Counted from the first letter of the stretch, positions 18,019 through 45,673 are shown. The stretch is DNA of 48,756 nt from Malacoraja senta (GCA_038087875.1 JAXLNO010005853.1:186001-234756); one strand, 5' to 3'. Numbers and translations are program-made. The notes: generated by a model from the sequence alone, not told the origin.

Positions 18019-18080
18019 TTATTCTCCACTTGCATCCTCGGCCTGTTCTTTTGTATATACAACCGTTGCGTAAATGCAGC
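18019..18080 (-). CDS. Terminal coding exon with ITIM-like CIYATV
   Basis: Acceptor ttgtttatctttcag|GC, phase 1. Translation GCIYATVVYTKEQAEDASGE then stop (TAA at 18019-18021). Followed by non-repeat sequence consistent with a 3' UTR. Confidence 0.72.
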
Positions 18081-19399
18081 CTGAAAGATAAACAATTTCC
18101 ATTTTATGATTTTATGCTGTTATTGTAAGATTCTGCTACCTTGATTCAAACCATTGAGAACCATAGTTATACAACACGAAAACAGGCCCTTCGGCCCAAC
18201 TTTCCAATGCCGACCAAGATGCCCCATCTACTCTAATCCCACATGCTTGTGTTTGGTCTATATTCCTCTTAACCTTTCCAATCCATGCACCCTGTCCAAA
18301 TGTGTTTTAAATGTTGTCATAGTATCTGCCTCAACTACCTCCTCTGACAGCTCGTTCCATATACCATCACCCTCTGTGTGAAAAAGTTGCCTCTCAGGTT
18401 CCTATTAAATCTTTCCCTTCACATCTTAAACTCGTCCTCTCGCATTTGATTGCCCTACTCTTGGAATAGATAGGTATGCAAACAACTTATCTATTATCCT
18501 CGTGAGAGGAAAACTTCTAATCTCTCAAACTCAGAGCCTATCCAGAACTGGAACCCTCTCTGCAAATTCAGTCAGCCTTCCACCCCAGATCCAACGTTCC
18601 CCTCTCCACTATCATCTGATGGCCACACTCCCCAGTCTTGCACTCAACTGCTGGTTAGACAGGTAAGATAAACCGATGACATGGTCATCCTGGTAGATTT
18701 GGGATCCTTGTATTCTGGTCCTTCTTCAATTGTGCCTGGCTTTCCCTGGACCTGCCCTCTCAATATTAGATAATTGCTTGAATTCAACCCAGTTTGAGCA
18801 AGGCCAGGCCCTCTCACCCATCAGAGAACCAGCTTGTCAGAGAGTCTCTCCTCTTTATTGTGGGTACTCTTAGTCTTCTCATTGCCAGAGGGAACTTGCC
18901 CCATTCCGAAGCTCTTTGCTCCCACACTGACCCCTTCCCCCCATCATCCATCCAACCCCCTGAGACCGCGATCATCAGCTGTTTATAGTCAGAGTCATAC
19001 AGTATGGAAACGGGCCCTTCGGCCCAACTTGCCCATACCTTCCAAGATGCCCATCTACACTAACCCCACTTGCCCACATTTGACCCATATGTCTCTAAAC
19101 CTTTCCTTTCCATGTACCTGACCAAATGTCTTTTAAATGTTATCATAGTACCTTCCTCAGCTACCCTCCTGGTAGCTCTGACCACCACCCTCAGTGTGAA
19201 AAAGTTGCCCCTCTTTTTCCCATTATATCTTTTAGCTCTCACGATAAACCTAAGTCTCCTGGTTCTTGAGTTAAACCTATATCCTCTGGTTGACAGCCGA
19301 CTACACAGAGCCAAGTTACTGTCTGAGGAATCTTCTCCACAGAATGTAAGGAATAGGGAGGGAAGTTGGCCATTCAGCCACTCAAGACTATTCTGCTAT

Positions 19400-20045
19400 T
19401 CAACATGATTGATGAAGGATATTGAGGCATTAGTCAGGCAAAAGGGGCATATGTCAGATATAGGCAGCTGGGAATCAAGCAAACTTCTCAAGTATAAAGG
19501 GTGTAGGCTTACAATTTAGAGTGAAATCAGGAAGACAAAAAGAGGACATGAGATAGCTATGGCAGATAAGATAACGGAGAATGCAGAGAAATTCTCGAAG
19601 TATATTTAGAGCAAAAGGCTAACTAAAGAGAATAGGATCAACATGGTCATCCATGGGAGATGGGCGAGGTTTTAAATTAACATTTCTCATCTGTATCGTG
19701 GAGAAGGTCATGGAAGTTAAGGAATTAAGAGTAATGAATTGCAATACATTGGAACATATATACATTACAAAAGAGGTGCTGGCAGACTTAAGACATATTA
19801 GGGTAAATAAATGCCCAAGGCCTGATCAGGTATATCATAGGATATTGTGGGAAGCTAGGGAAGAAATTTCAAGTGCTCTAGCAGAGGCATTTGCATCATC
19901 TTTAACACACGTATGGTACCGGAAGATTGGAGGGTGGTTAATGTTGTGCCCCTATTTAAGAAGGGCTGCAAGTACAAGACAGGAAACTACAGACCGGTGA
20001 GCCTGTAGTGGTGAGGGAATTACTGGAAGGGATTTTGAGGGTCAG
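19400..20045 (+). mobile_element. Degraded CR1 ORF2 internal fragment
   Basis: IRVNKCPRPDQVYHRILWEAREEI and gaaactacagaccggtgagcc, the CR1 pre-RT segment. Confidence 0.75.
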
Positions 20046-20416
20046 CATGTTAATTCTGGCCAAATTGGAGATGTCAGGACACTAAAATTGTGTAAAGGCT
20101 TCTGGCCTGCTAGGCCATTTGATCAATTTAAATGTGCCTTCTGCAGAAATGGGACAAGCTGCAGAATGGTGCCAGCTTGTCTAGAGCCTAGATAAGAGTT
20201 GCAGGGAAAGAATGGGACTTCTGCGGATTCTTACAATTAGGTGTAAATTGCATAAAACGGATTGGGTGAATGCAAACCAGACATACACATTGTAAATATT
20301 GTTGCAATGCTTTGCTTTGCTAGACGTTGATTGGGTTAAGTGTTGAGCCTTGTCTGTGTTTCTTGAATATCTGGGCAAATGTTTCTATGTTTGCTTCCTT
20401 CCAGAAGCTCCGTTTG

Positions 20417-22660
20417 CAGGGCTGCCAACTCTCACGCTTTCAGCGTCAGAATCACGCCTTGGAGCAAATTCTCACGCCCTCACGCTCATGACCGAGTTCT
20501 CACGCTGAGTTCAGTCCCTGTATAGTTTGTCCCTTTGCGCCGCATGCCAGGGATCTGCATGGTTTGGCGAAGCGCGTCTGTTGCCGGCTGTGAGTGACGT
20601 CGCGTCTCTTCTCTCTTGGTTGGATGTGCAGCCGCCGGGTGTCAGCAGCTCTATGTGCCGGCTGTGAGCGCTGCGCTGCCGGCCGCCACTGCAGCCTCGC
20701 TCCCTCCCTCCCTCCCTCCCTCCTTCCCTCCCTCCTGCCCTTCAACTCACACGGCAGCACCAGCGCCGCCAATCCACGCTGCACCGTGCCCACCAGACTC
20801 CCCATTGGGCGGCCGGGGAGAGAGAGGGAGGGGGGAAAGAGAGAGGGAGAGAGAGAGGGAAAGAAAAAAGGGAGGGATGGAGGCAATGCGAGACAAGGGG
20901 AGGGAATGTAGAAAGGGGATGAAGGAAGGAAAGGAGAAAGTGGAGAAAGAGGGAGGGGGAGGAAAGAGGGAAGGATAGGGGCAGGAGGAAGGGGTGGTTG
21001 GAGCGAGGGGGTAGAAAAGGTGTGTGTGTGCGCTTGTGTGTCTGTCTCCCTGTGTGTGTCTCCTTGTGTGTGTATGTATGCCTCCCTGTGTGTGTGTGTC
21101 TCCCTGTGTGTGTGTGTCTCCCTGTGTGTGTGTGTCTCCCTGTGTGTGTGCATGTCTGTGTGTGCGTGTCTGTGTGTCTCCCTGTGTGTGTGTCTCCGTG
21201 TGTGTGTGTGCGTGTCTGTGTGTCTCCCTGTGTGTGTGTGTCTCCCTGTGTGTGTGTCTCCCTGTGTGTGTGTGTCTCCCTGTGTGTGTGTGCGTGTCTG
21301 TGTGTGCGTGTCTGAGTGTCTCCCTGTGTGTGTGTCTCCGTGTGTGTGTGTGCGTGTCTGAGTGTCTCCCTGTGTGTGTGTCTCCCTGTGTGTGTCTCCC
21401 TGTGTGTGTGTGCGTGTCTGTGTGTCTCCCTGTGTNNNNNNNNNNNNNNNNNNNNNNNNNNNNNNNNNNNNNNNNNNNNNNNNNNNNNNNNNNNNNNNNN
21501 NNNNNNNNNNNNNNNNNNNNNNNNNNNNNNNNNNNNNNNNNNNNNNNNNNNNNNNNNNNNNNNNNNNNNNNNNNNCTGTGTGTCTCCCTGTGTGTGTGTC
21601 TGTCTGTCTCCCTGTGTGTGTGTGTCTGTCTCCCTGTGTGTGCGTGTCTGTTTCCCTGTGTGTGTGTGTGTGTGTGTGTCTTCCTTTGTGTATGTGTCTC
21701 CCTGTGTATCTGTTGTCACATCCTGGCCTTAGACAGGGCTGCCAACTCTCACCATTTGAGCGTGAGAGTCACGCATTTCAGCCAATGCTCACGCTGATGA
21801 CAGAATTCTCACGCTGTCTTCAATCCCTGCACAGTTTGTCTCTTTAGCGCCACATCACAGTGATCTGTGCAGTCTGGGGAAGCGCGTCAGTTGGCGGCTG
21901 TGAGTGACGTCGCATCTCTTCTCTTCTCTTCTTTCTTGGTTGGATGTGCAGCCACCGACAACATGAAGCAGCCGGAGATAGAACTAACCAGGTGAATTGG
22001 TTGTAACACATGGGGGGGACCATAATGAGGCCAAACATCTAGGACAGGGTTCGACAACCTACGGCACACGGGCCGAATCCGGCCCCTAACCCAAAAAAAA
22101 CACCTTTTTTTTTTCAATTCGTTTTCACGGAGTCAGGGCAGGCAAGCCGACCTGAGAACTGCACTGCAGCCAGTCCCTGGGATGCGAGCTGATCTGGGAA
22201 CGGCAGCCAGTCCCTGGGCACGCAGAATGCCAAATTGATCATTATGGACAAATTGGGCCAGCCATGTACATGTTGTATAACTCTGACTCTATGCAGATCT
22301 GAATGGGCTTAGAAGGACCATTTAAGCAAAATTGCCCTCACTTTCCCCATTTTGATTCTTGAGATTAATATCCCTTTGCTCTGTTAACAGCGTTAAAGTA
22401 CTTATGAGATAGAGTCAGGAAAGGGAACATGTTATTTTCTTTTAGTTTGCTTTAATTTGTTAGTTGATTTTTTGTTAACTGCCATAATTTCTGAAATGGT
22501 CTTAATGTAACTTAACTGTTATAAAGCAGTAATAAGTGATTTTTGTCCAAACAATTGGAACTTGCATAAAATGTTTGCATTATTAGCAGGGATGCCAACT
22601 CTCACGCATTGAGCGTGAGACTCACGCATTTCACAAAACTCTCATGTTCTCACGCTGATC
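20417..22660 (+). repeat. Three copies of a hAT-like terminal sequence CAGGG(C/A)TGCCAACTCTCAC (20417, 21734, 22587)
   Basis: Direct repeats of about 220, 225 and 75 bp with repeated CTCACGC subterminal motifs. Confidence 0.6.
20815..21715. repeat. Polypurine tract followed by a compound ctccc(tg)n satellite containing a 140-N assembly gap
   Basis: GA-rich at about 20815-21015, (TG)n units punctuated by CTCCC at 21016-21715, Ns at 21436-21575. Confidence 0.95.
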
Positions 22661-22971
22661 ACTAAATTATATAATGAGAATAGGACCTGTTTTGCTTAAT
22701 AAATAGTGTAGGAAGGAATTGCAGATGCTGGTTTAAACTGAAGATAGACACTAAAAACTAGAAGAACTCAGCAGGACAGGGAGCATCTCCGGATAGAAAG
22801 AATGGGTGATGTTTCGAGTCGAGACCTTCAGCCTGAAGAGGTTGAAAACCAGCCATAAAACACAATGACTGGACATGTGTGTTATTCAACTAAGGGCAGA
22901 AATCGGAATCATGTGTTCATCTTTATTCACGTGACACCATAATAAATATATTACAGAAAAAATAATTTAAT

Positions 22972-23180
22972 GGGGTGGCACGGTGGCGCAGTGGTAGAGT
23001 TGTTGCCTTACTACCACATGGGTTTTCTCTGGATATTCCGGTTTCTCCCATATCCGAAAGAAGTGCAGGTTTGTAGGTTAATTGGCTTCTGCAAATTGTC
23101 CCTGGCGGTAAGGATGGAATTGGTGTATGATAGATTGCTGGTCGGTGTGGACTTTGTGGGCGGAAGGGCCTGTTTCCATA
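22972..23180 (+). mobile_element. V-SINE, internally deleted
   Basis: ggtggcgcagtggtagag head, V-domain, tail gggcggaagggcctgtttcc. Confidence 0.75.
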
Positions 23181-23839
23181 TATATTTTTACATATATATC
23201 TTAATCTCATTGAACCATATATGATTGAATATGTGGCATTATTTTCGTCTTGTTTCTATATTCAAAGGGTAAGGTTGAAACCGTCTGAAGAAGGGTTTCG
23301 GCAAAAAATGTTGCCTATTTTCTTCGCTCCATAGATGCTGCCGCACCCACTGAGTTTCTCCAGCAACTTTGTCTACCTTCGATTCTCCAGCATCAGTAGT
23401 TCCTTCTTGAACAAGGTTGATTGATTTATTTGTGCAGAACAGTGATGGAAGTCCGACTTTTGCTTTGTTTCTCTGAGTTTTTCTCTATATATATACATAA
23501 CAGCATGAATATAATCTGATTTCCATATATGAATACAGTCATTCATGTGCTGCACCTGTTGATCAGAGCCTGGCTCTATTGTGGAATGTAATTAGGAATG
23601 TAATTTAGCCTAACCTTATTCATACCTAATCCAATTTAAAGCATAAATGTTGCATTCAAATGCAAGTTAAAAGACTCGCTACAGTATGCACCAGATTCCA
23701 CAATTTCATGTTGAAAAATGCAAAAGCTCCCACACCCTCCCTTCCCCCCCCCCCCCCCCCCCCCCCGGTCGCTACGCTCCCTCGCAATTTCTCACTCTCA
23801 ACTCTCACCAAATGATGGCGGCCCTGCGTTTGAATACAA

Positions 23840-24225
23840 TGTATTGGTTACTGTATTATTGGGTTTGGGAAATATCTATCATGTACTGTGTTAATTGATA
23901 TCTGTTATTGGACTGTAAAGAGACCAGCCCCATATGGTCCAGCCCCTCAAGGTTCGGCGACCTATAAAAGGCAGCTCCCACGAGGTCCTGTGTCGATCTT
24001 CTGGGAGAACGCTTGGGACTGCATGACCTTCTGGAGTGTCTCTGCTTGCACGAGGCTAGGAGGGCTTGGCCAAGCAGATACAAGGATCGAACCCGCGGTG
24101 GTTTGGGGTAGTAGTGGGTAACTGTTATTGTGTTTTTCCAAAATAAAGTATAGATGCGCAAGTGCTTGACTCAGTATCTTATTGACTGAAACTAGACTGG
24201 GGGCAAGCTTAGAACGAGCTTTACA
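23840..24225 (+). mobile_element. Solo-LTR-like sequence
   Basis: TATAAAA at 23963, AATAAA at 24142, ends ...TTTACA, several possible TGT starts. TSD not identifiable. Confidence 0.45.
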
Positions 24226-24834
24226 AGGATGTACAAGGATGTACAGTTTTGGTCTCCTAATGTACAGTTTTGGTCTCCTAATGTACAGTTTTTGGCTCCT
24301 AATTTGAGGAAGGACATCCTTGTGATTGAGGCAATGCAGTGTAGGTTCACGAGATTGATTCCTGGGATGGTGGGACTGTCATATGAGGAAAGATTGAAAA
24401 GACTAGGCTTGTATTCACTGGAGTTTAGAAGGATGAGGGGGGATCTTATAGAAACATATAAAATTATAAACGGACTGGACAAGCTAGATGCATGAAAAAT
24501 GTTCCCAATGTTGGGCGAGTCCAGGGGCCACAGTCTTAAAATAAAGGGGTCATTTAAGACTGAGGTGAGAATTTTTTTTTCACCCAGAGAGTTGTGAATT
24601 TATGGAATTCCCTGCCACAGAGGGCAGTGGAGACCAAATCACTGGATGGATTTAAGAGAGAGTTAGATAAAGCTCTAGGGGCTTGTGGAGTCAAGGGATC
24701 TGGGGAGAAGGTAGGCACGGGTTATTGATAGGGGACGATCAGCCATGATCACAATGAATGGCGGTGCTGGCTCGAAGGGCCGAATGGCCTCCTCCTGCAC
24801 CTATTTTCTATGTTTCTATGTTTCTATGTTTCTA
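24226..24834 (+). mobile_element. 5'-truncated CR1 with (TTTCTATG)n tail
   Basis: VQFWSPNLRKDIL...LYSLEFRRMRGDLIE translation, tail at about 24803-24834, triplicated 21-mer at the 5' junction. Confidence 0.92.
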
Positions 24835-26034
24835 CCCGGATTTGGAAAGGTAACGACTGATGAGGGATAGTTAGCATGGCTTTGTGTGTGGAATTTGTGT
24901 GTGACTCATGAATTTGACTGAGCTATTGACGAGGCGATGAGTCTATTGATGAGGGCAGAGCTGGTACACATTGCCTACATGGACGTTAACAAGGCCTTTG
25001 CCAAGTTCTCACTTGGCTTACTAGTCTGGAAGATTAAATCACATGAGGTCTCGGGTGAATGAGCCAATTGGATATAAATTTGGCGTGGTGGAAGGTGGTG
25101 GTGATGGGTTGTTATTCAGACCGGAGGCCTGTGACTAGTGGTGTATCACAGGGATCAGTGCTGGGCCCACTCAGTATGAAATGGGTTTGATGTGTTCCCA
25201 AGGGCTGTCCTCGCAGATGTGTGTATTTTGCCGCTCACGGTGTGTTCGGTGGTCCTTACCAGTCTCCTCCTCTTTGCAGGGAGGTCTTTGAATGTGCACA
25301 TTGCTGTAGAGAGTGTTATTCTCAGACTCCTGGGGATCTGAAAAGAACACAGATTGTTATTGCAATCCAGCATCTCTCCCCCACTGTATTCTATCACTCA
25401 AACCACCCACTCCCATTTAAACAACATTGGGACAGGTACATGGATTGGAAAGGTGTATAGGGATATGTGGATGGGGCATTTTGGTTGGCTTGAGCAAGTT
25501 GGACCAAAGAGCCTGTCTCTGTGCTCTATGACTCTATGAGTCCCCATCTCTGATTATCACTGTCTCTTGCCTGTTCCAATTGCCCCTCCTATAGTGGTCC
25601 ATCTTTTGCCAAGACTGTTCTTCACCCCTCATTGTGATACGTGGCAAGCCCCGAGAGAACCCTCGCTGCTTCTGTAGATACAGAACTGTACTGCAGAATA
25701 GACAGCATTGTACCTCCAGGTCTGATGTTTGGCTGCCCGATGGTGGGAAACAGAAAATAAACAACACCAGGATCTCTAGTAACTCCATGTCCTGGGTCTT
25801 TGTTACTGCTTCCACCATGTCTGGCCTTTGCTGCACCTTCCCTGAATGTTGGATATGGAGAGCTCTGGATCCCAGGCTCGATAGGAAACCCAGTGTGTAT
25901 TGTCAGTGCCAGTGGATGTTTCTAGTCAGTACATCAAGGGTTTGCCTCCCAGCCCATTGGGGACACTATTTTGCATGGGGCGTCCACACCACTACTGTTG
26001 TTTCACAGCTCACCGTGTGCTGACTGTTCCTTAC

Positions 26035-26112
26035 CTTTCTCCACTCCTACTCGGGAACGGCTTTGAACATGAATAATGCTGTAAATGAGGGCATCTGGAG
26101 AGTCACAGGGAT
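26035..26112 (-). CDS. Cytoplasmic exon 3 with canonical ITIM LIYSII
   Basis: Acceptor tttgtgtcctttccag|AT, donor G|gtaagg. 78 nt, phase 1-1. Translation DPCDSPDALIYSIIHVQSRSRVGVEK. Confidence 0.8.
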
Positions 26113-26462
26113 CTGGAAAGGACACAAATTTACTGCACAACTTCATCGCCTTGCTATCTTAACCTCACAATCCCAACCCCTGAACTACTATCTCCCTCTT
26201 TGGTGACCCTCGGACTGTCCTTGATCAGACTTTGTTGACTTTACTTTCACTAAACGTTATTCCCATATCATGTATCGATACACTGTAAATGGCTCGATTG
26301 TAATCATGCATTGTCTTTCTGCTGACTGGATGGCACGCAACAAAAGCTTTTCACTGTACCTCGGTACACGTGACACTAAACTAAACTGTAACTGTCCATC
26401 AGTCTCTCTCCCCCCATCCCTAGCCCTGACAGCCCAATCTCTCCCCTCTCCTATCACCCTAC

Positions 26463-26519
26463 TCCCTTTTTCTGCAGTTTTACTTCCCTGCAGGTGGAAA
26501 ATAGAATATTGACAAGAAC
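26463..26519 (-). CDS. Possible optional cytoplasmic exon (GSCQYSIFHLQGSKTAEKG)
   Basis: Acceptor cgtaccttcag|GT and a weak donor A|gtaggg. 57 nt, phase 1-1, open. Not needed for the gene model. Confidence 0.3.
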
Positions 26520-28628: not shown

Positions 28629-28745
28629 CAACGTTCCTGTCCAATTCTCCTGGTGTTGGAACTGCCTGGGTGGCTGCCCTGTTTCTTGTCTCTGTGTTTA
28701 AATCAATAACACTGTAAATAGGGTCCACTTCAGGCTCCTGTGAAC
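28629..28745 (-). CDS. Cytoplasmic exon 2 with ITIM-like PIYSVI
   Basis: Acceptor ttttttgtgtctttgacag|GT, donor G|gtgagt. 117 nt, phase 1-1. Translation GSQEPEVDPIYSVIDLNTETRNRAATQAVPTPGELDRNV. Confidence 0.8.
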
Positions 28746-30036: not shown

Positions 30037-30108
30037 CTGGCTCTGGTCCTTGTGGTTTCCGACCATTGGCCACGCTGGCATCAACACAACACATACGCTG
30101 CTGTGAAC
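30037..30108 (-). CDS. Cytoplasmic exon 1 (GSQQRMCCVDASVANGRKPQGPEP)
   Basis: Acceptor ctttcctgtgtctttgacag|GT, donor G|gtaata. 72 nt, phase 1-1, in frame with the TM exon. Confidence 0.7.
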
Positions 30109-31670: not shown

Positions 31671-33304
31671 TAAAACACAATATTATGTACTCTGCTATTT
31701 TTCTCTTTACACTACCTGTTGTACTTGTATATGGATTGATTGTACTCATGTATAGTATGATTAGGTTTGACCAAATAACATGCAAACAAAGATTTTTACT
31801 GTATCACAGTAGAAGTGACTATAATAATAAATTAATACATGAATGCAAGCATTTGTTGCTGTTGTACAAATCTAAGGACCTAATCAAGAATCTATTAATC
31901 TCCACTTTAAATTTTCCACTGACTTGACCTCCACTGTTGCCTGTGGCATTGAATTCCATAGATTCATCAGTCTCTGGCTAAAAAAAAAAATTGTCCTCAT
32001 CTCCATTCTAAAGGTTCATCCTTTTATTCTGAGGCTGTGCCCTCTGGTCCTGGACTCTCTCACTGCTGGTAACATCCTCTCCATGCCCACATGTCCTTTT
32101 GATAGCATAGAGACCAAGGACCTATACATTTACACCTGAGTTCATATCTTCTTGCATTAAAGGCCAACATTACATTTGTTTTCTGAAATCCACACGTTTA
32201 ATACATAAAGTGAGTTATCTGTCAACAGGTATTCCCCAATCCGTCACCACTATAACAGCATTGAAGTTTGCCACCTTTTTTTTACTGAAGTGGATTATCT
32301 CACATTTTCACACATTCCCATGTTGTTTCCCAACTCACTTGGCTTGTCAATATATTCTCTTCAAACCTTGAGCCATCACATTCCCACTCAGTTTCACATC
32401 ATCTGCAAACTGGTCCACGATTGAATCAGAAAGCTCAGAACCTTTTTCAAATGATACCCAAGCATTTGAAGAACAGCGAGGATCTAAGGACAGAATCACA
32501 GCCGGACCTTCCCACAAATTCATCAGAGGGCAAGGGCAATGAATACCTTATCTCAGGACTGTATTATTAAGAACAGGAAATTCTGACCCTGTTATACCCA
32601 AGTCACCATGGACAAGGTCTGTCAGGGTAACAATGGTGAGGGCAGACTTGACCCTTCAAGGGGTACAGCCCCAGTCCACCAGAACTGAAGATTTAACGTT
32701 GGCACACGATGTCTGTGCCGACCACAATGCCAAATTAAACTAATCGCTTCTCTCTGCACATGGTTGATCTCTTTCCATTCCATGCATATTTACGTGTATA
32801 AATGCTCTTTAAACATTGCTATCGTGTCAGCTTCCACACCTCCCCTGGTTGCACGTTCCAAGCATCTACCATTCTGAACAAATGGCACCTCTTAAATCTC
32901 CTTTAAAAACTTTCCTATTCTCACCTTAACCCATGCTCTCTAGTTTTTGACATCTCAACTCTGGGGAAAAAGACTAACTACTCTTTCTATGTGTCTCAGA
33001 ATTTGACATTCTTTGATCAGTTCACCCCTCAGCATCAGATGTTCCAGAGAAAAACAATCCAACCTGTCCTTACAGTTAAAATCTTCTAATCCAGCCAGTA
33101 TTCTGTAACCCTCTGCACCCTCTCCAAAGTGTCCAAATCCTTCCTGAAATGTGGTGACCAGAACTGAACAAAATACTCCAAATGTGGCCTAACCAGGGAT
33201 GACTGGCCTCCTGTTCGCAGTTCCAACCTACAATATTTGAAAAAGCCACCAGTCCCAAGAACACCCACAACAGCCCACAATGTAGTTGTCATTGGCAAAC
33301 TCAC

Positions 33305-33679
33305 CTTTTTTCAAAGACATGAGAGCAAATACAATCACAAGGAGGACAATAGCCAATATGGGTAATCCAAAGTAGAGGCCTAGGTTCAACGGTCTCCCAT
33401 CATTGGGTAAGCTGATCTCACGCGTGTCTATCTGGTGTTCATTCACAGCCACACACGTGTATTTCCCTGGCAGCCTGGGGTGAAGCAGCTTTCCCACAGT
33501 CAGTAGTTTCTCTGGATCATGCGTGACTGTCATCTCACTACTGTTCCCGGGCAGTGCGCTGTTCCCTGGGCCGATCCACGTGATGTTTGCAGGGGGCTTC
33601 CCTTCAGCCCTGCACACGAGGGTGTGTTCTCCAGTTACATTGTCGTTCACAACAGACAGCTCCAGGATGGTGGCTGGGA
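33305..33679 (-). CDS. Ig C2-set domain plus transmembrane exon
   Basis: 375-nt exon, phase 1-1. Acceptor ttccttctccaag|TC, donor G|gtgagt. Translation (V)[10 protein letters not shown]...[18 protein letters not shown]...GKYTCVAVN, then hydrophobic [24 protein letters not shown] and KK stop-transfer. From memory this resembles the Siglec-15 C2 motif (LCTAEGEPPPALAWSGP...GRYTC). Confidence 0.92.
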
Positions 33680-34335: not shown

Positions 34336-34698
34336 CCACAACCTCCAGTTTCGTCTCATCCTGAGTCACCGTCTCCTGTGTGGAATTCCTGACCCAAACG
34401 TAACAGAAATAGTCACTGCTGTCGTTCAGTCTGAGCTCCTTCACTCTGATAGAGGCGTCTCCCTGGTCTAGTTTTCCCACCAGCTTATATCGACCTCCTC
34501 CCTTTACAGTGACAGTGTAGGGAGGGTTCACAGAGTGGGGGTGAGTGTGATTAAAGACTGTGGACTCTTCCCGTGGATTCCCCTTCATCCAGCAGACAGT
34601 GATGGGGCTGGGATTCTTGTTCAAGTTGCTGAAGAAGCAGGGCAGTGTGGCTGAATCTCTTCTCTTCCCAATCACCATGGATGTGTTCTTCTTTCCAT
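34336..34698 (-). CDS. Ig V-set exon V1 (membrane-proximal V)
   Basis: Open 363-nt exon, phase 1-1. Acceptor ttttctctatacaag|AT, donor G|gtaagg. Translation includes ATLPC, CWMKG, RYKLVGKLDQGDASIRV and YFCYVW. Confidence 0.92.
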
Positions 34699-34930
34699 CT
34701 TGTATAGAGAAAAGTTGTATTTAACAATCTATTCAACATGGTTTATAAAAATACATCATCCATGCCTGTGACTTTGATTCTCCATCCCACTCCCACTCTG
34801 ATCTGTCTGTCTCAGACCTCCTGCACTGTTCTAACGAGGCCCAATCTCAAGTAACAACACCTCATCTTCTGTCTGGGCAGCATGAAGCCTTTGTGCTAAC
34901 ATTTAAAGCAACAATTTTAATAACTTGCTT

Positions 34931-35339
34931 AAGAGCCAGTCCATCATACGCGAATTTGTAGGTGACTACAGGCGACTGGGTAGTCACCACACGGTCGCCG
35001 GGTGTCACCTGTATGGTTGTGAGTCGTCTCCTTAAGTCGCCCAAAGAGTCGTAGCATTTTTCTGGTCACCGCTGCATTTTGAAATGGTGAAAACTTTTCG
35101 GCAACACTCGGCGACCTTGGGCTTGTCGTAGCTTGTCTTCTCCTGACGTAGGTGCTGTCGTAGGTTGTCGCCAGGATAATGTAGGTTGTCGCCAGGATAA
35201 CGTAGGTTGTCGCCGGTGCTGACCTCGGTGAATTCAATTGGCGACTACCTACGTCAACCTACATCAACCGGCGACAGGTACCGGCGTCAAGAGAAGTCTT
35301 CAGTTGTCTTCAGTTGTCACCAAAGTGGGACAGGCCCTT
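34931..35339. mobile_element. Non-autonomous DNA transposon (MITE, Harbinger/PIF-like)
   Basis: Imperfect TIRs (aagagccagtcc / gggacaggccctt), CpG-rich interior with gtcgcc repeats and a 21-bp tandem gtaggttgtcgccaggataa. Confidence 0.6.
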
Positions 35340-35619
35340 TACTGTTTGTATAAGAACTGGCCAGAACTGCCTCAGAAGTCAATAGTACCTGACCCATACC
35401 ACCATAACCATAGGCTGATGACAATATCACTGGAGATGCCACAAGACTCCCGTCAACACCAACATTGGAGATGAGACAGTGACGTTCACCTCTGTTCAAA
35501 CATGAGAAAGTGAAGCCAATTGCAAGAGTACAGTCCACATAAGTGGCAGCTCAAATATCAAACCCACTCATGGGCTGTAGTGTGCTTATTGAAAATGCAA
35601 GAGTATCATGAGGAGGGCA

Positions 35620-36660
35620 GATAAACGTAGAACTGCCGAAAGATTCTGCAATTTTTAATCTAAATACAGATATAGGCAGAGAAATGGCAGATGGAGTTTG
35701 ATCTGAACATGTGTGAAGTGTTGACTTTGGGAGGTTGAATGCAAGTGGAAAGTAGACAACGGCAAGACCCTTAAAACCACTGATGTACAGAAAAATATTG
35801 GGATCCAATTCCATAACTCCCTGAAAATGGCAACATGTTAAAAACGTGTACTGTATTCTTGTTTAATTGGTCAAGGTACTGAATACAAGATGTGTAGGAA
35901 GGAACTGCAGATGCTGGTTAAAACCGAAGATGGACACAAAAAGCTGGAGTAACTCAGCGGGACAGGCAGCATCTCTGGAGAGAAGGATGGGTCACGTTTT
36001 GGGTTGGGAAGAAGATACTCAACCCGAAACGTCATCCATTCCTTCTCTCCAGAGATGCTACATGTCCCGGTAAGTTACTCCAGCTTTTAGTGTCGATCTA
36101 CTGAATACAAGAGTCAGGAAGTCATGTTGTAGCTCTATACAACTTTAGTTACAACACTGGGATTATTGCATTCAGTTTTATGTGCAGTTCTCACCCATTA
36201 CAGGAAGGATGTGGAGAATTTGGAAAGGGTTCAAAAGAGGTTTACCAGAATGCTGCCTGGATTAGAGGGTATTAGTTATATGAAAAGGTCGGACATACTT
36301 GAACTGCTTTCTCTGGACTGTTGAAAGTTTATAAAAATATGAAAGACATGGATAGGAGAGAGAGTCAGAACCTTTTGCCTGTGGCAGAAATGTCAATGAA
36401 TAGACGGCATTGTGATAAGGACAGAGGGGAAAAGATGAAAGGAGATATGTGGGGAAAGTTATTGTTTACACAGAGGGTGGTGGGTGCCAGGAAAATACTG
36501 CTAGGGGTGGAGGTGGAGGCAGCTACGATAGTGGAGTTTTAGAGGCTTTTTGAAATGCAGGTAATGGAAGAAATGTATCACCTGCAGGTAGACGAGATTA
36601 ACGTAGCATCATGTTCGGTACAGACATTGCGGGCCAAAGGGCCTGTTCCTCTGCTGGTCT
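35620..36660 (+). mobile_element. Degraded CR1 3' fragment in the V2-V1 intron
   Basis: gagtttgatctgaacatgtgtgaagtgttgactttggg...gaggtttaccagaatgctgcctggattagag. Interrupted by the 208-bp palindromic insert. Confidence 0.7.
35891..36098 (-). mobile_element. 208-bp palindromic PLE-pLTR-derived insert with 14-bp TSD
   Basis: tactgaatacaaga at 35877-35890 and 36099-36112. About 80-bp inverted arms. Confidence 0.88.
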
Positions 36661-36740
36661 ACGCTGTCACTGGGAGCTCATTCCTCTTAAGGTTGTTCAA
36701 TATGATATTATCGTTTACAGCATAACATACGTTTCCTTAC

Positions 36741-37103
36741 CCACAACCTGCAGTTTCATCTCATCCTGAGTCACAGTCGTCAACATTGAAGTCCTGACAT
36801 AAACATGACAGGAGTAATCACTGGCGTCACCCTGTTTGAGTCCCTTCACTCTGATGGAGGCATCTCCCTGCTCAAGGTTTCCCACCAGCTCATATCGATC
36901 TTCTTCATTTACATTTTCAGGAATGCGATGTGCTGCTGGGCGGGGAGAATTGTGACGAAAGACAACAGACCATTTTGGTGGATTCCCCTTCATCCAGCTG
37001 ATGGTGATGGAGCTGGGATTCCTGTTTGAGGCACTGAAGGAGCAGGGCAGTGTGGCAGTCGCACCCTTCCTTCCAATCACTATGGATGCTCTGTCATTAT
37101 CAC
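36741..37103 (-). CDS. Ig V-set exon V2
   Basis: Open 363-nt exon, phase 1-1. Acceptor ctctatgcaag|GT, donor G|gtaagg. Translation includes ATLPC, SWMKG, RYELVGNLEQGDASIRV and YSCHVY. Paralogous to V1 and V3. Confidence 0.92.
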
Positions 37104-37464: not shown

Positions 37465-38745
37465 TCATAGGATCTTACGCGATAGGAGTAGAATTAGACC
37501 ATTCGGCCCATTAAGTCTACTCCGCCATTCAATCGTGGCTGATCTATCGTTCCTAACTCAATTCTCCTGCCTTCTCATAACCTCTGACACCTGCACTAAT
37601 CAGGAATCTATTTATCTCTGCCTTAAATATATCCACTGACTTTGTCTCCACAGCCTTCTGTGGCAAAGAATTCCATAGATTCAACCCACTCCGACGAAAG
37701 AAATTCCACCTCATCTCCTTCCTAAAAGAACGTCCTTTAATGCTGAGGCTAAAACTTCTCATCTTAGACTCTCCCACTAGTGGAAACATCCTCCCCACAT
37801 CCAAGCCTTTCACTATTCTGTCTGTTTCAATGAGGTCCCCCCTCATTCTTCTAAACTCCAGTGAACATAGGCCCAGTGCTGTCAAATATTCATCTGATGT
37901 TAACCTACAAGATGGAGGTCGGAGGGGAGAGTGGACGCTGGCGCGGTTTCGTTGCCGCTGCTCTCTCCTCAAATTGTGCTTCTGATTTTCTTTTTTGTGT
38001 TTTTGGAAGGAATTCTGTCCCTGATTTGTGTATTGGTCTTTATAACTTATTTTTAAAATTCTGATTATATGTTTCCTATAAATCTCTGTAAGGTGTCCTT
38101 GAGACCTCGGTATAAGGCGCCCATAAATAAAATTCATTATTATTATTATTACTCATTCCTGGGATCATTCTTGTGAACCTCCTCTGGACCCTCTCCAGAG
38201 CCAGCACATCCTTCCTCAGATATGGTGCCTAAAATTGCTCACAATATTCCAAATGTGACCTGACCAGCGCCTGAAAGAGTCTCAGCATTACATCCCTACT
38301 TTAGTATATAAGACCTCTTGAAATAAATGCTAGCATTGCGTTTGCTTTCTTTACAACTGATTCGACTTGCAGATTAACTTTTTGGGAAACCTGCACCAGC
38401 ATTCCCAAGTCGCCTTGCACCTCCGATTTCTGGAGTCTCTCTCCATTTAGAAAATAATCAACGCCTTTAATCCTATTAGCAAAATACATGACTCCACACT
38501 TTTCCACACTTTTCCGTCTGCCACTTCTCTGCCCACTCTCCAAACCTATCCAAGTTCTTCTGCAGAGTCCCTGCTTTCTCTGCACTACCTGCCCCTCCAC
38601 CTATTTTCGTATTATCCGCAAACTTAGCCACAAAGCCTTCAATCCCCTCATCCAAATCATTAATATACAGCGTGAAGAGCAGCGGCCCCAGCACCGAGCC
38701 CTGCGGAACTCTGCTAGTAACTGGCAGCCAACCAGAAAAGGCCTG
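37465..38745 (-). mobile_element. CR1 LINE 3' fragment, interrupted by a short (ATT)n-tailed insertion at about 37905-38150
   Basis: [22 protein letters not shown]...FADN and CR1 C-terminal motifs in ORFs 38476-38826, 38301-38600 and 37553-38137. Confidence 0.88.
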
Positions 38746-39182
38746 GGTAACCGATTTAGGAGTGGTGGGGGGTTTTAACTTCCGCGCCTTAATCACATCT
38801 GCGGGAGGAACCCCCCCACCGCACACCTCCCCTGGGGAAGAAGGGCTGAAGAGGGCTGTGCAAGGTGAGGGTCAACATTCCAGGACAACTGGAATGGAGG
38901 CGGCGGATGCAATGGGCCTCTGTGGCCACTGCATCGAGGACTGTAAAATGGTTCAAAATGGCAACTGTTGCCCAGACTCAGTGGGTTCTTCTGTACATTA
39001 TGTACTAACCGGGGGGATTGTGCTTATTGATGTAAGGTGATATTCTTACTGATCTGTATGCAAAAATGTATTTCACTGTAATTGGTACATGTGATAATAA
39101 AGAAACCATTGAACTGAAAATAGACACACAATACTGGAGTAATTCAGCGGGCAGGCAGCATCTCTGGATAGAATGAATGGGT

Positions 39183-39210
39183 GACGTTTCGGGTCGTGAC
39201 TCTTCTTCAG
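39183..39210 (-). ncRNA. Minimal type I hammerhead ribozyme motif, core intact
   Basis: Minus strand CTGAAGA-A-GAGTC-AC-GACCC-GAAAC-GTC = CUGANGA / stem II / GAAA / GUC. Confidence 0.6.
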
Positions 39211-40199
39211 GAGAACTGAGTCAGTATCACAGATGCTGTAGAACTCGCCAGTTCTGATAGAAACAGCGGGCAAGTCACCTGAAATTGTTCTATTCAAGGT
39301 TGACCCATTGAACCATTGAGTCAACATTGAATACAACAATTTCTGGTAACTTTCCCGTTGTTTTTATCAGATGTTCTACAGCAGGTTATCCATCTGTGAT
39401 ACTGACTCAGTTCTCCTCTCTCCACTGACACTGCCTGATCTGCTGGGTGTTTCTTGCAGCTCTGACGTGCATTTTGCAGCTCTGGTTTATATCTTTGTTT
39501 GTGTTCTCTGTCTCCAGTTTCCTTCCTTAATTTATCAACCAGATAATTTCATCAACAGCAAACCTAGACTCACCCTTTCAGAGATATTTCCTATTTCCGA
39601 TCCACCCCTCTATACAACCTCTGCAACTTCAGCTAATTTATTTTAAGTTGCAATAATCGTTGAGAGAATAACTGATTAATATTCCATTTTGCTTATCTTC
39701 AGTAGAACTGGTTAGTTCTGATAAAAGAGAGAAAAAGTATCATCCAAAATTCTTGAATTCAATGGAGTCTGCAATGATGCAGTGAGCCCTGTTCTTCAAA
39801 TTGCATTAGACCGGTTATAAGGAAGTCACAAAAAATAGTCAGAGGGGGAATTGCATGGATGATTAAAATTACAAGCAACAGAAAGCTCAGGATTAACCAT
39901 GTAGAATGAATAAAATGTTTTCCCTCGTTCCCCCGCCCATCAACTGCATTTATTCCTTGGGAAAGCAGCCAACATAATAGTAAGATTAAACGAGAACTTA
40001 CCAGTTTGAAGTTTGATCTGTATTTTATGAGGAGTTACGATGAGGGATTACGTGAAGACCCCGTCCAGCACGCATGCGCGACATTCTTCAAAGCAGCGGT
40101 ATGGAATCACAGGAAACACAATAATTGAAATAAACATAGTAAAGAAAAGGAGAACTAAGATACCTGTTGATCTATATATTTGAGGGTGGGAGCGGAGGG

Positions 40200-40310
40200 C
40201 ACGTAATCCCTCATCGTAACTCCTCATAAAATACAGATCAAACTTCAAACTGGTAAGTTCTCGTTTAATCTTACTATTTTACTTCGGAGTCACGTGAGTG
40301 ACTACGTGAA
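40200..40310. repeat. DIRS internal complementary region (ICR)
   Basis: 40200-40278 is the exact reverse complement of 39976-40054 (79 nt). 40276-40310 is the exact reverse complement of 44786-44820 (35 nt). Confidence 0.95.
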
Positions 40311-40479
40311 AATTTTAAAGCTCTGTGATTTCAAACCGTGTAACAGTTCATACTTCACTCGCTGCCGAAGTCATTCAAGGGAGGAAGTATGTTATCGTAA
40401 TCAACCATAATCTGTTTGTAAACAATAATGGTATCTATTAAACAATAACAAAAGACAAAATGCTCCCCCGGGCTTAAAT

Positions 40480-41470
40480 TATATATTTTTGCAGATTTTA
40501 AAACTCTTTCTGCAAATAACACAGGTTCTGCTAGCGGCTTGTGGTAGAACATTTGGAACGTTTTCTCCATGTTCATTCTTTTAGCCGCCGATGTGGATGC
40601 TGCCCTGGTGGAGTGAGATGTATATACATCAGTATCTACTCCAGCAGCTCCCAGTACCTGCTTGAGCCATCTCGAGATGGTTTGGCTCGACACCCAACCA
40701 TGAGGTTTCTTGTGTCTGACCCATAAGGCTTTTTTATTTATTTATTTATTTATTATTATTATTATTATTATTTTTTTTTTTTCCCTTCTCCCTCGAGAAT
40801 CTCTTGTTGTGTTGATGTAAGTGAATAAGTGAGTCATGACACACAACCGTAGGTCAGGTGGGTATGCCCGGAAATCCATAACTAGGACTCAAGTTCCTGG
40901 CTTGCTCTGCTTTAGCAGCTCCTGAATGGTGAATGAGACCCGGTCTGGTGTTATAACCATGTTGTCCAGTCGCAGTAAGTGGAGGGACTGGTCTCTTTGT
41001 GCTGAGACTAGTAGCATCAGCATGACCGTTTTCAGGGTTAGCTTTTCCAGGGTGAGAGACCTGGCTGGGGACCATCCCCTTAGGTATGTCAGGACCACAC
41101 TGACATCCCAGATTTGTGTATACCTAGGTCTAAGAGGGTTGGAGTTGATGATACTCCTCATGAGTTTGATCACCAGCGGGTGAGACCCTATGGCCTGTTG
41201 TCCTGGCACCTGTTTTAAGTAGGCTGACAGCGCACGTCTGGCAGTATTGATGGCGCTGTAGCTCAATCCTTCATTATGGTGAAGGCCCCCCAGGAATTCC
41301 AGTACATTGGTTATGGTTGCAGATGAGTACGTTGTCCCAGTAGTCGAGCAGTATCTTTCCCACTTCCTGATGCTCGATAGGTATTGTTTCCTGGTGTACA
41401 TACGGTGTTATCATGTTGATGGTCCTGTCAGACAATCCCAGTCCCAGCAGTGGTCTTTTGATAATCTGCA
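40480..41470 (-). pseudogene. DIRS tyrosine recombinase, disrupted
   Basis: ORFs 40889-41401 and 40355-40693. In-frame TGA at 40889, A/T microsatellite at about 40730-40782, and a shortened C-terminus. Confidence 0.88.
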
Positions 41471-41553
41471 ACCCAGTAGGTTAATTTTGGCATGGCATGG
41501 ATGACTTATGCCTGATACAGGGTGTGTCAATAGGTCTGGGCTACTGGGAAAGG

Positions 41554-41907
41554 TCATAGGAGTTTCGATGACCATGTCGAGGACCACTGGGAACCATGGC
41601 TGTGTAGGCCAGTTGGTACTATCAAAATACCTGAAGCAGAGTCCATCTGTATTTTGCGTAGTACCCTACAGATTAAGGCAGAAGGGGAAAAAGCATAGAA
41701 GAAATCGGTCCCCCAGTTCAGCGCGAATGCATCTATCGCTGCTGCCTCAGGGTGTGGTTCCCAAGGGACATACATTGGTACGTGGTGATTTAGTCTGGAT
41801 ACAAAGAGATCGATATCTGGTGTGCCATATTGGTTTGTAATTTTAGCAAAAGCTCTAGGATTTAACATCCATTCGGTGTTTATCATTGAATTTGCGTGAC
41901 CTGGCAC
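41554..41907 (-). pseudogene. DIRS DNA N6-adenine methyltransferase-like domain
   Basis: PDIDLFVSRLNHH...IDAFALNW..FFYAFSP..LI.RVLRKI, the MT motif typical of DIRS1 pol. Confidence 0.8.
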
Positions 41908-42297
41908 TGTATTTAGCTTACCTGGTAGGTAAGTTGCTGATATCCAAATATGTCTATCGACCCACCATTACCAGATTGTGTTGACCCAATTGTCACATGA
42001 TATCGATTTTATTCCGGTCATATGGTTAATATAGGCCACCACCGTGATATTATCAATTTGTAAATGAACATGGAAGTTGTGCATATTCCTACAATATGCT
42101 TTAAAACCATAAAACGCACCCAACATTTCCAAATAATTTATGCCCAGTGTTTGTAGTAAAGACGAGTCTAGGTTAGTCCATCTACCACCTGTGCTGGATA
42201 TGGTATTAGTTGCTCCCCAGCCTTGAGCACTGGCATCTGTTTGTATAGTTAACGTTGGGTTATTGATGATGATAGGGCTGGAACTATGCCAAATGTG

Positions 42298-43250
42298 TTA
42301 TATCCACCATTGTAACTCTGATATTGCTTCAATGGGTAGTTTCATGGATCTGTCAAAGTGACCTGCATGTCGTTTCAACGCCTGTACTTTTGCCCTTTGT
42401 AGGTGCTGATAGTGCAGGAGTCCAAATTGTGTAGCTGAAAATGCTGCTACCATTTTGCCAATTACTCTTGCCACTTGTCGGATGGTTGGTCGATTGCTTA
42501 CCATTAAATTGTTGCACATCTGGGCCAATTCTGCTGCTTTACCTTTTGGCAACGTTACAGACATGTGGATTGAGTTAATTGTGAATCCCAGATAGTCCAT
42601 AGTTGTGGATGGCGTCAACTTAGATTTATCTGGATGTATGACAAACCCAGGGTTTCAAACAATTGTTTGGCAGCTAATACAGCTGATTTAGCCAACTCCA
42701 TGGTTTTGCCAACTATTAGGATATCATCAAGATACGCCATGACAATATGTCTTTGTTTCGTTAATGTTGCCTAGGCTGGTTTTAATATCTTGGTAAATAG
42801 TCTAAGGCTGATGTCAACCCATTAGGCAACACTTTATACTGCCATAGTTGCCCCATCCAGGTAAATTTTCAGGTATCTGCGATGACCCTTGTGAATGGGT
42901 ACTGAATAGTAGGCATCTTTTAAATCAATGCTTGCCATAAAGTATCCTTTGGAAATCAGTTGTTTAGCAGTTACAAATGTTTCCATTTTGAAATGTACAT
43001 ACTTAACAAAGGTATTTAGTGAGGTTAAGTCAATGATGATGCGACATCCACCATCTTTTTTGCTTTTGGTAAATATATTTGAGACAAATTCCAAAGGATC
43101 ATGTTTGGATTTCTCAATGACACCCTTTGTAAGTAACCTCCCCAGTTCTGCTTGAGCCTCTAGTTCTCTTTGACTGAGAGGGTAAAGACCCTTTGGGGTA
43201 CGTGCTGAACTGGTGGCATGTTTTCTTGAATGAACTCTATTTTGTATCCC
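42298..43250 (-). pseudogene. DIRS reverse transcriptase, frameshifted
   Basis: ORFs 42834-43094 and 42298-42618 plus intervening frameshifted segments (YKVLPNGLTSA, YLDD). Confidence 0.9.
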
Positions 43251-45304
43251 CGAATACTGTTAAGTATATAACTATCATTCGTGAGACACCTCCTGTTAGT
43301 ACAGACCTCCTGTTAGTACAGTTCCCCATTTACATGCTGGTAGGAACCAGACCCACCTACCTCCATAGTTATGGTAGTGTTCCTTTCTTCCGTTTGTTCA
43401 TCTGTCGTTATACTGCTGGATGTACTGCTGATGTACTGCTGATTGGGGGTGGCGCATTTTCCATGGGGTCCGTTCTGGGCCCTGGCCTAAAAAGGCTTTC
43501 GGGGATAGTATGCGGACCCCGAGCTTTCACCAGTTACCTAAATTTGACCTTGACTGGTGGACGCGGTGGGGTACTGCCGTCTGGTTTTTTGTGTGGGTCT
43601 GCTCGTTCCGGGGCCTGCCCTCATGAGGCCAAATGCTTTGGACTCTTCCTCCAGGTCTTTCACTTGTCCTTCCAAATAACAGGATCTGCAGCTCTGAGGC
43701 CGGTGTTTTACACAGTCCTGCAAACCTGGGATTGAGGGCAGGTCTTATTCTCTCCTTGCGGAGGTTATTTATCTCATATTGGGTGTAGCACAGCAGAGCC
43801 AGAGTGTCTTGCTGGTTTGTGGTCATATCCACCCCATCCACGGAACGAGCATAGGCTGTTATCCCTGTCGTCAGGAGCTTGAGGATTTTAGCTCCTGGTT
43901 CCGGATACTCTGTCCCCCCCCCCAGATTTGGCTGTTAACAGCCGGTACATTGAGCGAACTGCAGTTCCAGCTCTAGTGCCTCATTAAGTACCTGTCTTGT
44001 AGGGGTTTGAGGGACAGGTGGTTGATGCTGGCCGCCAGTTTTGGCTCCAAAGGCCGCCCTGCTCGTGGTGAAACCATGTAGCGAATCTCCACACCCAGCA
44101 GCTCTTCCTGATCCTGTACCCCAAGCGTACTCCCGACATCTTCAGCCAATGACCCCTGTTCCTGACCAGCCCAGCCCTGGTCGCCAACGCTGCCCTGCTT
44201 TGAGGGGAAAGTGATGGCCAGTGCATTGTAGAGTACTGCTGTGGGAGTGCCTGATCCCCCTGGCGAGACTGCTCTAGCTCCTGAACCAAGTCTCGCTGGA
44301 GCAGTTGCTCCATGAGCCTTTCCATTCGGCTCAGGCAGCTAGCTCTGCCGCTCTAAGGCGGACCCTCCTCATCGGTGTCAGACATAACCGGCCGGTTTAA
44401 AAAAAAAATTGTTTTAAAAACTTTTCCTCCAGCCCGCTGCCGCTCATCAGGCTGCGCTAGCGGGACTGGGCTCGGCTCGGTCTCGATGAGGGTGGACCGC
44501 CGCATATACGGTCCAGGTGCCGCCTCTCGCCCCCCACTGATGAAACACTCCCGTTCTGTTGGAGTCGAACGGGGGGCGGTTTTCTCCTTTGCCGTGCTGC
44601 TCATTTTCCCAGTTCCTCTGGAATAGAGAGCAGAGCACAGCTTGCGGATTACGACCTCAGTGTAAGACTTACCTGATGGTCCGCTGTTTAGTTTTCACCG
44701 ACGTGTAGCGGGAGCGCCTGTACTCCCGGTCGTCGCTGTTGCACTGCGTGAACGCTAATGTCGCGCATGCGTGCTGGACGGGGTCTTCACGTAGTCACTC
44801 ACGTGACTCCGAAGTAAAATCAAGGATCACTCACACCCGAGTTACTCTCTCTTCTCCCCTCCCCCATTACCAGAACCAGAGGCTGACAACAATGTCACTG
44901 GAGGTCCCATGATTCTCCCATGAACACCAGCAATGGAGATTAGACATGATGTTCACCCATGTTGAACCACTAGAAAGTGAAGCCAATCACAAGAAAGTAG
45001 ACTCAATAAACGGCAGCTGAAATGATCAACCTGTCCATTCCCTCCCACACACACAGGTATCTCCAGATACATTATCACCATCGCTCCAAGATGGTGGCTG
45101 AAGCCTAGAGAGGGATAAAAGTCAATTACATTCACTGTTATTCATTGGTGCAGGGGGAGAACCAGGAAGGGGTGAAGATTTGAAAGAGACCCAGCAGGAG
45201 AATGGAGTGAAATATTCAGAGAGGAAACAGAACGAAGCTGATTCTTCTCACCGTTGTTCAATGCGATTTTATCATTTACTCCTCAACACTGACTGTTTCC
45301 TTAC

Positions 45305-45673
45305 CCAAAACCTGTAGTCCCGTCTCATCCTGAGTCACCTGAATATCTTCCTTCAGAGTGGATTTCCAGATCCAAACATGACAGAAATAGTTGTTGGTGT
45401 CATTCAACGTGAGTCCCCTCACTCTGATGGAGGCGTCTCCCTTGTCTAGGTTTCCCACCAGCTCATATCGACCTCCTCTATTTACATTGTCAGTGCCGTG
45501 ACCGCTTGTGGGGTCGGAGCGGGTATGATTAAAGACAACGGACTCTTCCCATGGAGTCCCCTTCATCCAGAGGATAGTGATCACCCTGCTCTTTGTGCTC
45601 GAGGGGCTGAAGGTGCAGGTCAGTGTGGCACCACCTCCTCTCTTCCCGATCACCATGGATGCGCTGACATCAC
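45305..45673 (-). CDS. Ig V-set exon V3 (most distal) of a Siglec-15-like Ig receptor
   Basis: Open 369-nt exon, phase 1-1. Acceptor ctctatccgag|GT, donor G|gtaagg. Translation includes ATLTC, ILWMKG, GRYELVGNLDKGDASIRV and YFCHVW, giving the canonical B-strand Cys, C-strand Trp and F-strand Cys. Confidence 0.9.

Follow-up and report, generated by a model that had tools for sequence, protein, structure and literature searches.

Descriptions of Siglec-15 present it as a conserved Siglec with two domains and a purely activating role, and it is studied as a target in cancer and bone. It is composed of one V-set and one C2-set domain, followed by a transmembrane segment that contains a lysine. 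CD33-related Siglecs, such as CD33 and Siglec-7, combine a sialic-acid-type N-terminal V domain with more immunoglobulin domains and an uncharged transmembrane segment. Their tails contain a membrane-proximal immunoreceptor tyrosine-based inhibitory motif (ITIM) and a distal motif similar to an ITIM or to an immunoreceptor tyrosine-based switch motif (ITSM), and they have DAP12-coupled partners. Residue R143 of Siglec-15 is reported to be essential for sialic acid binding, and the transmembrane lysine binds DAP12 or DAP10 (PMC7226832). The fish Siglec paper that covers these features deals with teleosts only, in which Siglec-15 is activating, with conserved lysine and R143 (PMC7226832). Here, we present a gene from a 48,756-nucleotide stretch of the genome of the skate Malacoraja senta (GCA_038087875.1 JAXLNO010005853.1:186001-234756), the whole of which is called the window. 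The window contains most of one minus-strand gene, whose product, a type I membrane protein, belongs to the Siglec-15 lineage. Three tandem V-sets, a single domain of the C2 type, a transmembrane helix without charge, and a tail of about 135 residues are encoded within the window. If the protein is an inhibitory receptor, an inhibitory multi-V relative would stand alongside skate relatives with lysine or arginine in the transmembrane segment, and the Siglec-15 lineage would once have formed, or would still form, a system of activating and inhibitory pairs. The gene would also be a natural case of tandem V-set stacking and of copy-number variation of ITIM and ITSM exons, and it offers comparative immunology a concrete object, the little skate being an established laboratory species.

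Eight minus-strand exons, each preceded by a pyrimidine-rich tract ending in AG, followed by GT, and entered and left in phase 1, join into one frame of 1799 nucleotides (598 codons and a TAA stop). An earlier note on this DNA had proposed the same eight exons, and its frame was reproduced exactly. The V3, V2, and V1 exons match the Pfam V-set family (PF07686) with E values of 6e-15 to 3e-13. V3 (45305–45673, 369 nucleotides, E 5.9e-15) encodes the most membrane-distal V domain of the window, has a histidine after the F-strand cysteine (YFCHV), and is 93.5% identical in nucleotides to positions 14484–14852 of the Leucoraja erinacea locus (L001). V2 (36741–37103, 363 nucleotides, E 2.9e-13) and V1 (34336–34698, 363 nucleotides, E 1.2e-13) contain YSCHV and YFCYV, respectively. 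The fourth exon (33305–33679, 375 nucleotides) is composed of a C2-type immunoglobulin domain, which exceeds the gathering scores of the Pfam families Ig_3, I-set, and Ig_2, a stalk, the transmembrane segment, and a KK stop-transfer signal. As previously proposed, the transmembrane segment has no charged residue, and its Kyte-Doolittle mean over 19 residues is 2.88.

The first of the tail exons is the 72-nucleotide juxtamembrane exon t0 (30037–30108), which encodes SQQRMCCVDASVANGRKPQGPEP with a pair of cysteines. It is the sole open 72-nucleotide AG..GT exon with a good acceptor, and is also present in the L. erinacea models P0154 (isoform X3) and P0188 (isoform X1). Exon t1 (28629–28745, 117 nucleotides) encodes the motif PIYSVI and is 89.7% identical in amino acids to P0154, and exon t2 (26035–26112, 78 nucleotides) encodes LIYSII and has counterparts in P0154, P0188, and P0159, a relative from Rhinoraja. 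The last coding exon, t3 (18019–18080, 62 nucleotides), contains CIYATV and the TAA stop, and is 96.6% identical in nucleotides to L001 40757–40815. A further exon, t2b (25260–25337, 78 nucleotides, phase 1-1), was found by tblastn with the tail of P0159 (25338–25240, 78.8% identity, E 2e-11). It encodes DPQESENNTLYSNVHIQRPPCKEEETG, which contains TLYSNV, and is bounded by the acceptor ttttcag|AT and the donor CTG|gtaagg; an alternative in-phase donor 21 nucleotides downstream places the exon end at 25239. The join of t2 to t2b is present in L. erinacea isoform X1. With t2b included, the model has nine exons, 1877 nucleotides, and 624 codons, with all splice sites intact.

The 5′ end of the gene, with the leader and a further V exon (V0), is outside the window. 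Six-frame pieces of the 48.7-kb window, searched with a hidden Markov model built from the V exons and, by phmmer, with the sequence of the C2 exon, contained no further immunoglobulin or V0-type exon. A scan for a leader (ATG, hydrophobic stretch, and phase-1 donor) in the sequence before V3 and in the two introns between the V exons gave nothing convincing. Since the last base of the window corresponds to a point of L001 that the V0 exon precedes by 2.2 kb, both V0 and the leader must be beyond position 48756. From the orthologues, we infer that the DNA just past the end of the window encodes a leader and, at the N-terminus, a V0 domain of the Siglec-15 type with a preserved arginine. The ectodomain had been read as V3-V2-V1-C2 with only the leader missing; the three V domains are indeed present, but the orthologues have the additional N-terminal V0, which keeps the Siglec-15 arginine.

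The top matches of V1 among 1.8 billion representative proteins are multi-V proteins of skates that are RefSeq predictions. Amblyraja radiata LOC116971578 (P0001, XP_032874704, 596 residues) and L. erinacea LOC129695366 isoforms X3 (P0154, 694 residues) and X1 (P0188, 790 residues; XP_055488227/229 for the isoforms) are each named "uncharacterized protein". All three models have the order V0-V3-V2-V1-C2. The L. erinacea isoforms continue through the transmembrane segment to t0, t1, t2, and optionally t2b; in the A. radiata model, C2 is followed by an alternative 3′ exon that terminates the protein. The window aligns collinearly to the L. erinacea locus with 90–94% nucleotide identity, and the spliced window product is 85.7% identical in amino acids to P0188 and 86–88% identical to the two orthologues. 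Collinearity and amino acid identity therefore identify the gene as the orthologue, in another skate, of L. erinacea LOC129695366, and it is likewise the orthologue of A. radiata LOC116971578. All its exons are open in the three skate species. Rhinoraja longicauda LOC144611565 is a near relative with 64% amino acid identity, and a transmembrane segment and tail are likewise part of the Leucoraja and Rhinoraja models. The RefSeq skate models differ from a complete gene in that they are without a leader and end in read-through or in an alternative 3′ exon. The window contains one t2/t2b pair (26112–25260), compared with three in L. erinacea (L001 31842–36215) and at least two in A. radiata (L002 38531–40617), so the possible number of tail tyrosine motifs varies among close skates.

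Two side observations concern the A. radiata sequence. In its V1 domain (L002 29456–29818), arginine replaces the F-strand cysteine (YFRYV), and the domain would be without its core disulfide. Positions 32521–32450 of the window, on the minus strand, code for 24 residues identical to the C-terminus of XP_032874704, the model without a transmembrane segment; this may be a conserved alternative 3′ exon for a soluble form or else an exonised repeat.

The relation of the V domains to Siglec-15 is based on PDB sequence and fold comparisons, and the domain tree described below was built without bony-vertebrate Siglec-15. When the three V exons are combined into a profile, its first PDB match is human Siglec-15 (7zoz; E 4.2e-10), and the alignment covers W..G.P..VF, GR..L.GN, D.S.RV, and YFC. 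For the V0 domain of the orthologue, too, Siglec-15 is the first match (E 2.3e-10), in which ..NCRVEltGe pairs with ..FCRVEfaGd, and CD33 is a weak match (E 1.5e-4). P0161, a family member with a transmembrane lysine, aligns with Siglec-15 through the V and C2 domains and into the transmembrane segment. This alignment includes the Siglec-15 C2 motif C.AEG.PP..W.GP, to which a 16-residue stretch of the C2 exon of the window corresponds. The AlphaFold2 model of V3 (predicted local distance difference test score 85.5) has a V-set fold and the best TM-score to Siglec-15 (0.79), in a fold search that does not discriminate, as many V-sets have TM-scores near this value and CAR, Nav-beta4, JAML, CRIg, nectin, and MPZ have E values similar to that of Siglec-15. 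The resemblance of the V and C2 domains to Siglec-15 that had been noticed before is borne out by these matches.

The skate protein shares with Siglec-15 the motifs W..G.P..VF, GR..L.GN...D.S.RV, and YFC, the C2 motif, the canonical cysteines of the B–F disulfide, and the location of the arginine position immediately after the F-strand cysteine. Of the features of a strict Siglec-15 orthologue, it has the V-set sequence type, but not the arginine (in the V domains encoded by the window), the transmembrane lysine, or the architecture of one V and one C2 domain. Instead, it has three V-sets (four in the orthologues), an uncharged transmembrane segment, and a long tail with tyrosine motifs. We take R143 to be, by our own count, the residue in "FCR" of human Siglec-15; the corresponding position is occupied by His, His, and Tyr in V3, V2, and V1 of the window, respectively, and by Arg only in the V0 domain of the orthologues. 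On paper, the skate protein is similar to CD33-related Siglecs in its sialic-acid-type N-terminal V domain, additional immunoglobulin domains, uncharged transmembrane segment, and tail, and in the proposed DAP12-coupled partners. The extra domains of CD33-related Siglecs, however, are C2-set rather than V-set, and the similarity to them is far below that to Siglec-15. The lineage from which the skate family derives is that of Siglec-15.

Three family queries (P0001, P0161, and P0007) retrieved only proteins of cartilaginous fish, namely skates, rays, sharks, and chimaera, in a word-indexed search that cannot reach distant relatives and thus does not establish absence of the family elsewhere. 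Among the matches obtained, the family is one of cartilaginous fish, as had been suggested. The family table comprises 38 proteins. In the first form, named "Siglec-15" by NCBI, V0, V1, and C2 are followed by a highly conserved lysine-bearing transmembrane segment (NFIIGMLCLIPLIKFLLLLITGIIL) and a short tail. The second form has V0, one to three V1-type domains, C2, and an uncharged transmembrane segment, and its V0 mostly keeps the arginine. Within this form, six models, which represent five species, and the window product have tails with two to five Yxx[ILV] motifs. A third form, from skate, has an arginine in the transmembrane segment. Lysine- or arginine-containing transmembrane segments go with short tails without Yxx[ILV] motifs, from chimaera to skates. 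The elasmobranch "Siglec-15" proteins with transmembrane lysine (such as L. erinacea XP_055488168 and Mobula XP_062903801) belong to the same family, being built of V0, a V1-type domain, and C2. They have a single V1-type domain, a lysine in the transmembrane segment, and a short tail, whereas the window gene has three V1-type domains and an uncharged transmembrane segment. They are probably the activating partners.

The arginine position of V0 was also compared across the family. It is a leucine in elasmobranch forms with transmembrane lysine (P0007, P0160-P0162, P0165, P0168, P0172, and P0174), and the arginine is mostly kept in forms with an uncharged transmembrane segment (P0008, P0154, P0159, and P0164). 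The lysine form of the chimaera Callorhinchus has kept the arginine in V0.

In the domain tree, V0-type and V1-type domains are separated with a starred support of 100, and chimaera sequences are present in both clades. Within the V1-type clade, the V3, V2, and V1 domains of the window each fall in a subclade of their own that also contains Amblyraja, Leucoraja, and Rhinoraja domains (two subclades with starred supports of 99–100 and one with 91; the V2 clade is starred at 99). The tree thus shows the three domains as a skate-specific triplication of the second V domain of the family, placed by the same tree before the divergence of Amblyraja, Leucoraja, and Rhinoraja and after the batoid radiation. 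An independent, near-identical duplication of the V1-type domain is present in isoform X2 of the shark Heptranchias perlo (P0163), and tandem gain of V domains seems to recur in the family.

The ITIM signature used here was taken from PMC7226832. With t2b, the tail contains PIYSVI, LIYSII, TLYSNV, and CIYATV. In common usage, isoleucine is also accepted at position +3 of an ITIM, which gives [I/V/L/S]xYxx[L/V/I], and the ITSM pattern is TxYxx[V/I]. LIYSII of t2 is the only canonical ITIM, and PIYSVI, with proline at position -2, and CIYATV, with cysteine at position -2, are ITIM-like. TLYSNV fits the ITSM pattern; its exon has good splice sites and is included in L. erinacea isoform X1. The C-terminal motif IYA[TA]V is common to skate, ray, shark, and chimaera proteins, and its recurrence across cartilaginous fish argues for a function. 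The three-tyrosine tail of the earlier note is upheld in that its motifs are conserved from chimaera to skates, but t2b had been missed, so that there are probably four tyrosine motifs, of which LIYSII alone is a canonical ITIM.

We consider it likely that the gene encodes the inhibitory member of a paired receptor system. To its architecture and conservation we add a mechanism by analogy with paired immunoglobulin receptors and inhibitory Siglecs. The receptor would be displayed on leukocytes, where V0 may bind a sialylated or other ligand and the additional V domains may hold V0 off the membrane. The additional V domains, which diverge mainly in loops, may also bind ligands of their own. Src-family kinases would phosphorylate the ITIM LIYSII, the ITSM-type TLYSNV, and the ITIM-like PIYSVI and CIYATV. 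Phosphatases of the SHP-1/SHP-2 type could then dock on the phosphorylated tail and damp activating signals. The protein would be the inhibitory counterpart of family members with lysine or arginine in the transmembrane segment, which presumably signal through a DAP12-type adaptor.

The same tyrosine motifs could serve an endocytic or adhesion receptor, in which Yxx[IV] sequences are AP-2 sorting signals and the stack of V domains mediates adhesion of the kind known from CAR, JAML, and nectin. Each of the four motifs conforms to YxxPhi too, the fold-search E values of CAR, Nav-beta4, JAML, nectin, and MPZ are close to that of Siglec-15, and NCBI has automatically named some relatives "CXADR-like" or "CD276". 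We nevertheless regard this explanation as improbable. Sequence searches rank Siglec-15 first, the division of the family into charged transmembrane segments and tyrosine tails is typical of paired immune receptors, and in LIYSII and TLYSNV the residue at position -2 is also that of the ITIM and ITSM patterns.

Transcript evidence comes from X1, an RNA-type run from a related skate species that differs from the window by 3–6%. One contig of 2306 nucleotides at depth 58 has pieces on 34699–34336 (V1), 33677–33303 (C2 and transmembrane segment), and 28743–28629 (t1). Exactly 72 nucleotides lie between the C2-transmembrane and t1 pieces, and the depth of the corresponding bin (20.9 = 58.1 x 72/200) is that expected for t0. 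In this single contig, the joins between V1, C2-TM, t0, and t1 coincide with the predicted splice sites. Spliced RNA had been proposed as a check of the connection between the C2-transmembrane and tail exons; the X1 contig provides it for t0 and t1, but the joins between V3, V2, and V1 are without RNA support.

Several observations weigh against an inhibitory receptor with the complete V stack. X1 gives no RNA evidence of the V3-V2-V1 joins, and its contig stops precisely at the acceptor of V1. Depth over the V2-V1 intron (34700–36770) is 12–16, compared with 58 for the exons, and the body of V2 is uncovered; the intron coverage could come from unspliced pre-mRNA, intron retention, or DNA carry-over. 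X1 is from another species and, because of a 12-nucleotide deletion in C2, could represent a close paralogue. The t2-t2b-t3 joins and V0 were not observed for the M. senta genome. Only one of the four tail motifs is a strict ITIM, and the recruitment of phosphatases, the ligand, and the cell type that expresses the receptor are inferred. The ratio of non-synonymous to synonymous substitution rates (dN/dS) of the ectodomain is near 1 (0.55–3.3 in three skates), which also fits relaxed constraint.

The break at the V1 acceptor is what several alternative upstream partners of V1 would produce. The V exons may form a cassette that is used singly or in varying combinations, giving receptors with one to four V domains, of which the full tandem is perhaps a minor product. 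The three V exons are phase 1-1 and multiples of three nucleotides, and any skip preserves the frame; V2 and V1 are without a preceding leader exon. At least three isoforms are annotated in L. erinacea, and Rhinoraja models combine V0-V1, V3-V1, or V2-V1 types. These Rhinoraja combinations, however, differ from one another in the transmembrane segment and hence probably represent separate genes, whereas L. erinacea isoforms X1 and X3 and the A. radiata model all have the complete tandem of four V domains. Across skate genera, each of the three V types also forms an orthologous clade of its own. Cassette use is a possibility that we rate well below even, and tandem use of the V domains in a single inhibitory receptor is preferred.

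The substitution pattern could also be that of a decaying duplicate, a recently expanded family member drifting towards a pseudogene whose frames are open by chance. The ectodomain ratios, the insertion of a 4.8-kb DIRS-like element in the V3-V2 intron, and the loss of the F-strand cysteine from A. radiata V1 are in line with this idea. Since the nine exons are intact in three species, with 624 codons and intact splice sites, decay is very unlikely; a closely related transcript is expressed, and the tail exons, with dN/dS of 0.22–0.68, are more constrained than the ectodomain.

The ratio for V3 is 1.3–3.3 and exceeds 1 in all three pairs (window, L001 14484–14852, and L002 14446–14814), but with only marginal significance, with a bootstrap P of 0.025 in one pair, a Fisher P of 0.06, and non-significant values in the other pairs. 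With statistics this weak, positive selection on V3 is not claimed. Changes in the ectodomain cluster in the B–C, C′–C″, and F–G loops, which resemble complementarity-determining regions. This divergence in loops, together with the V3 ratio, suggests that the extra V domains may be a ligand-binding surface. Building on the inhibitory receptor favored above, we tentatively speculate that cartilaginous fishes have an old paired system derived from Siglec-15. Its tyrosine-tail members would mostly have kept the V0 arginine, and the elasmobranch lysine members would have lost it. In skates, the second V domain would have tripled, and the extra V domains might be a fast-evolving, pathogen-shaped surface for non-sialic ligands and not spacers. 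On balance we rate this scenario as doubtful.

A literature search for Siglec-15 with shark, skate, and cartilaginous fishes, with subscription journals outside its coverage, found no description of the family. The earlier note had named the receptor its best candidate for an undescribed system in the window, but RefSeq already models the orthologues (LOC129695366 and LOC116971578), and relatives have received the automatic names "uncharacterized", "Siglec-15", "Siglec-12", "CXADR-like", and "CD276".

A run of N at 21436–21575 is an assembly gap in a non-coding, intronic minisatellite that precedes t3. The (TGTGTGTGTCTCCC)n array spans 21020–21713 and flanks the gap on both sides. No exon lies within 3 kb of the gap, and no reading frame crosses it. 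The L. erinacea locus, although collinear, contains nothing that corresponds to the segment 23828–20416; the two flanks of the segment adjoin there at L001 37052–37056. Because of its minisatellite setting, its distance from the exons, and the missing counterpart in L. erinacea, the gap is irrelevant to the reading frame, and we rejected the idea that it hides or breaks an exon.

The V3-V2 intron contains, at 39976–44820, the DIRS-like retroelement, with fragments of a SAM-like integrase and of a reverse transcriptase. The element is not present at the orthologous L. erinacea site, where its flanks meet at L001 15325–15327, and the V3-V2 intron of A. radiata is only 2.5 kb long. The insertion is therefore recent and lineage-specific, and in comparison with the RefSeq orthologue loci it is peculiar to the species of the window. 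Downstream of the gene are fragments of long interspersed nuclear elements at 8698–11511 (minus strand) and 2060–2392, with matches to reverse transcriptase (RVT_1, E 9e-17) and endonuclease (Exo_endo_phos, E 2e-9).

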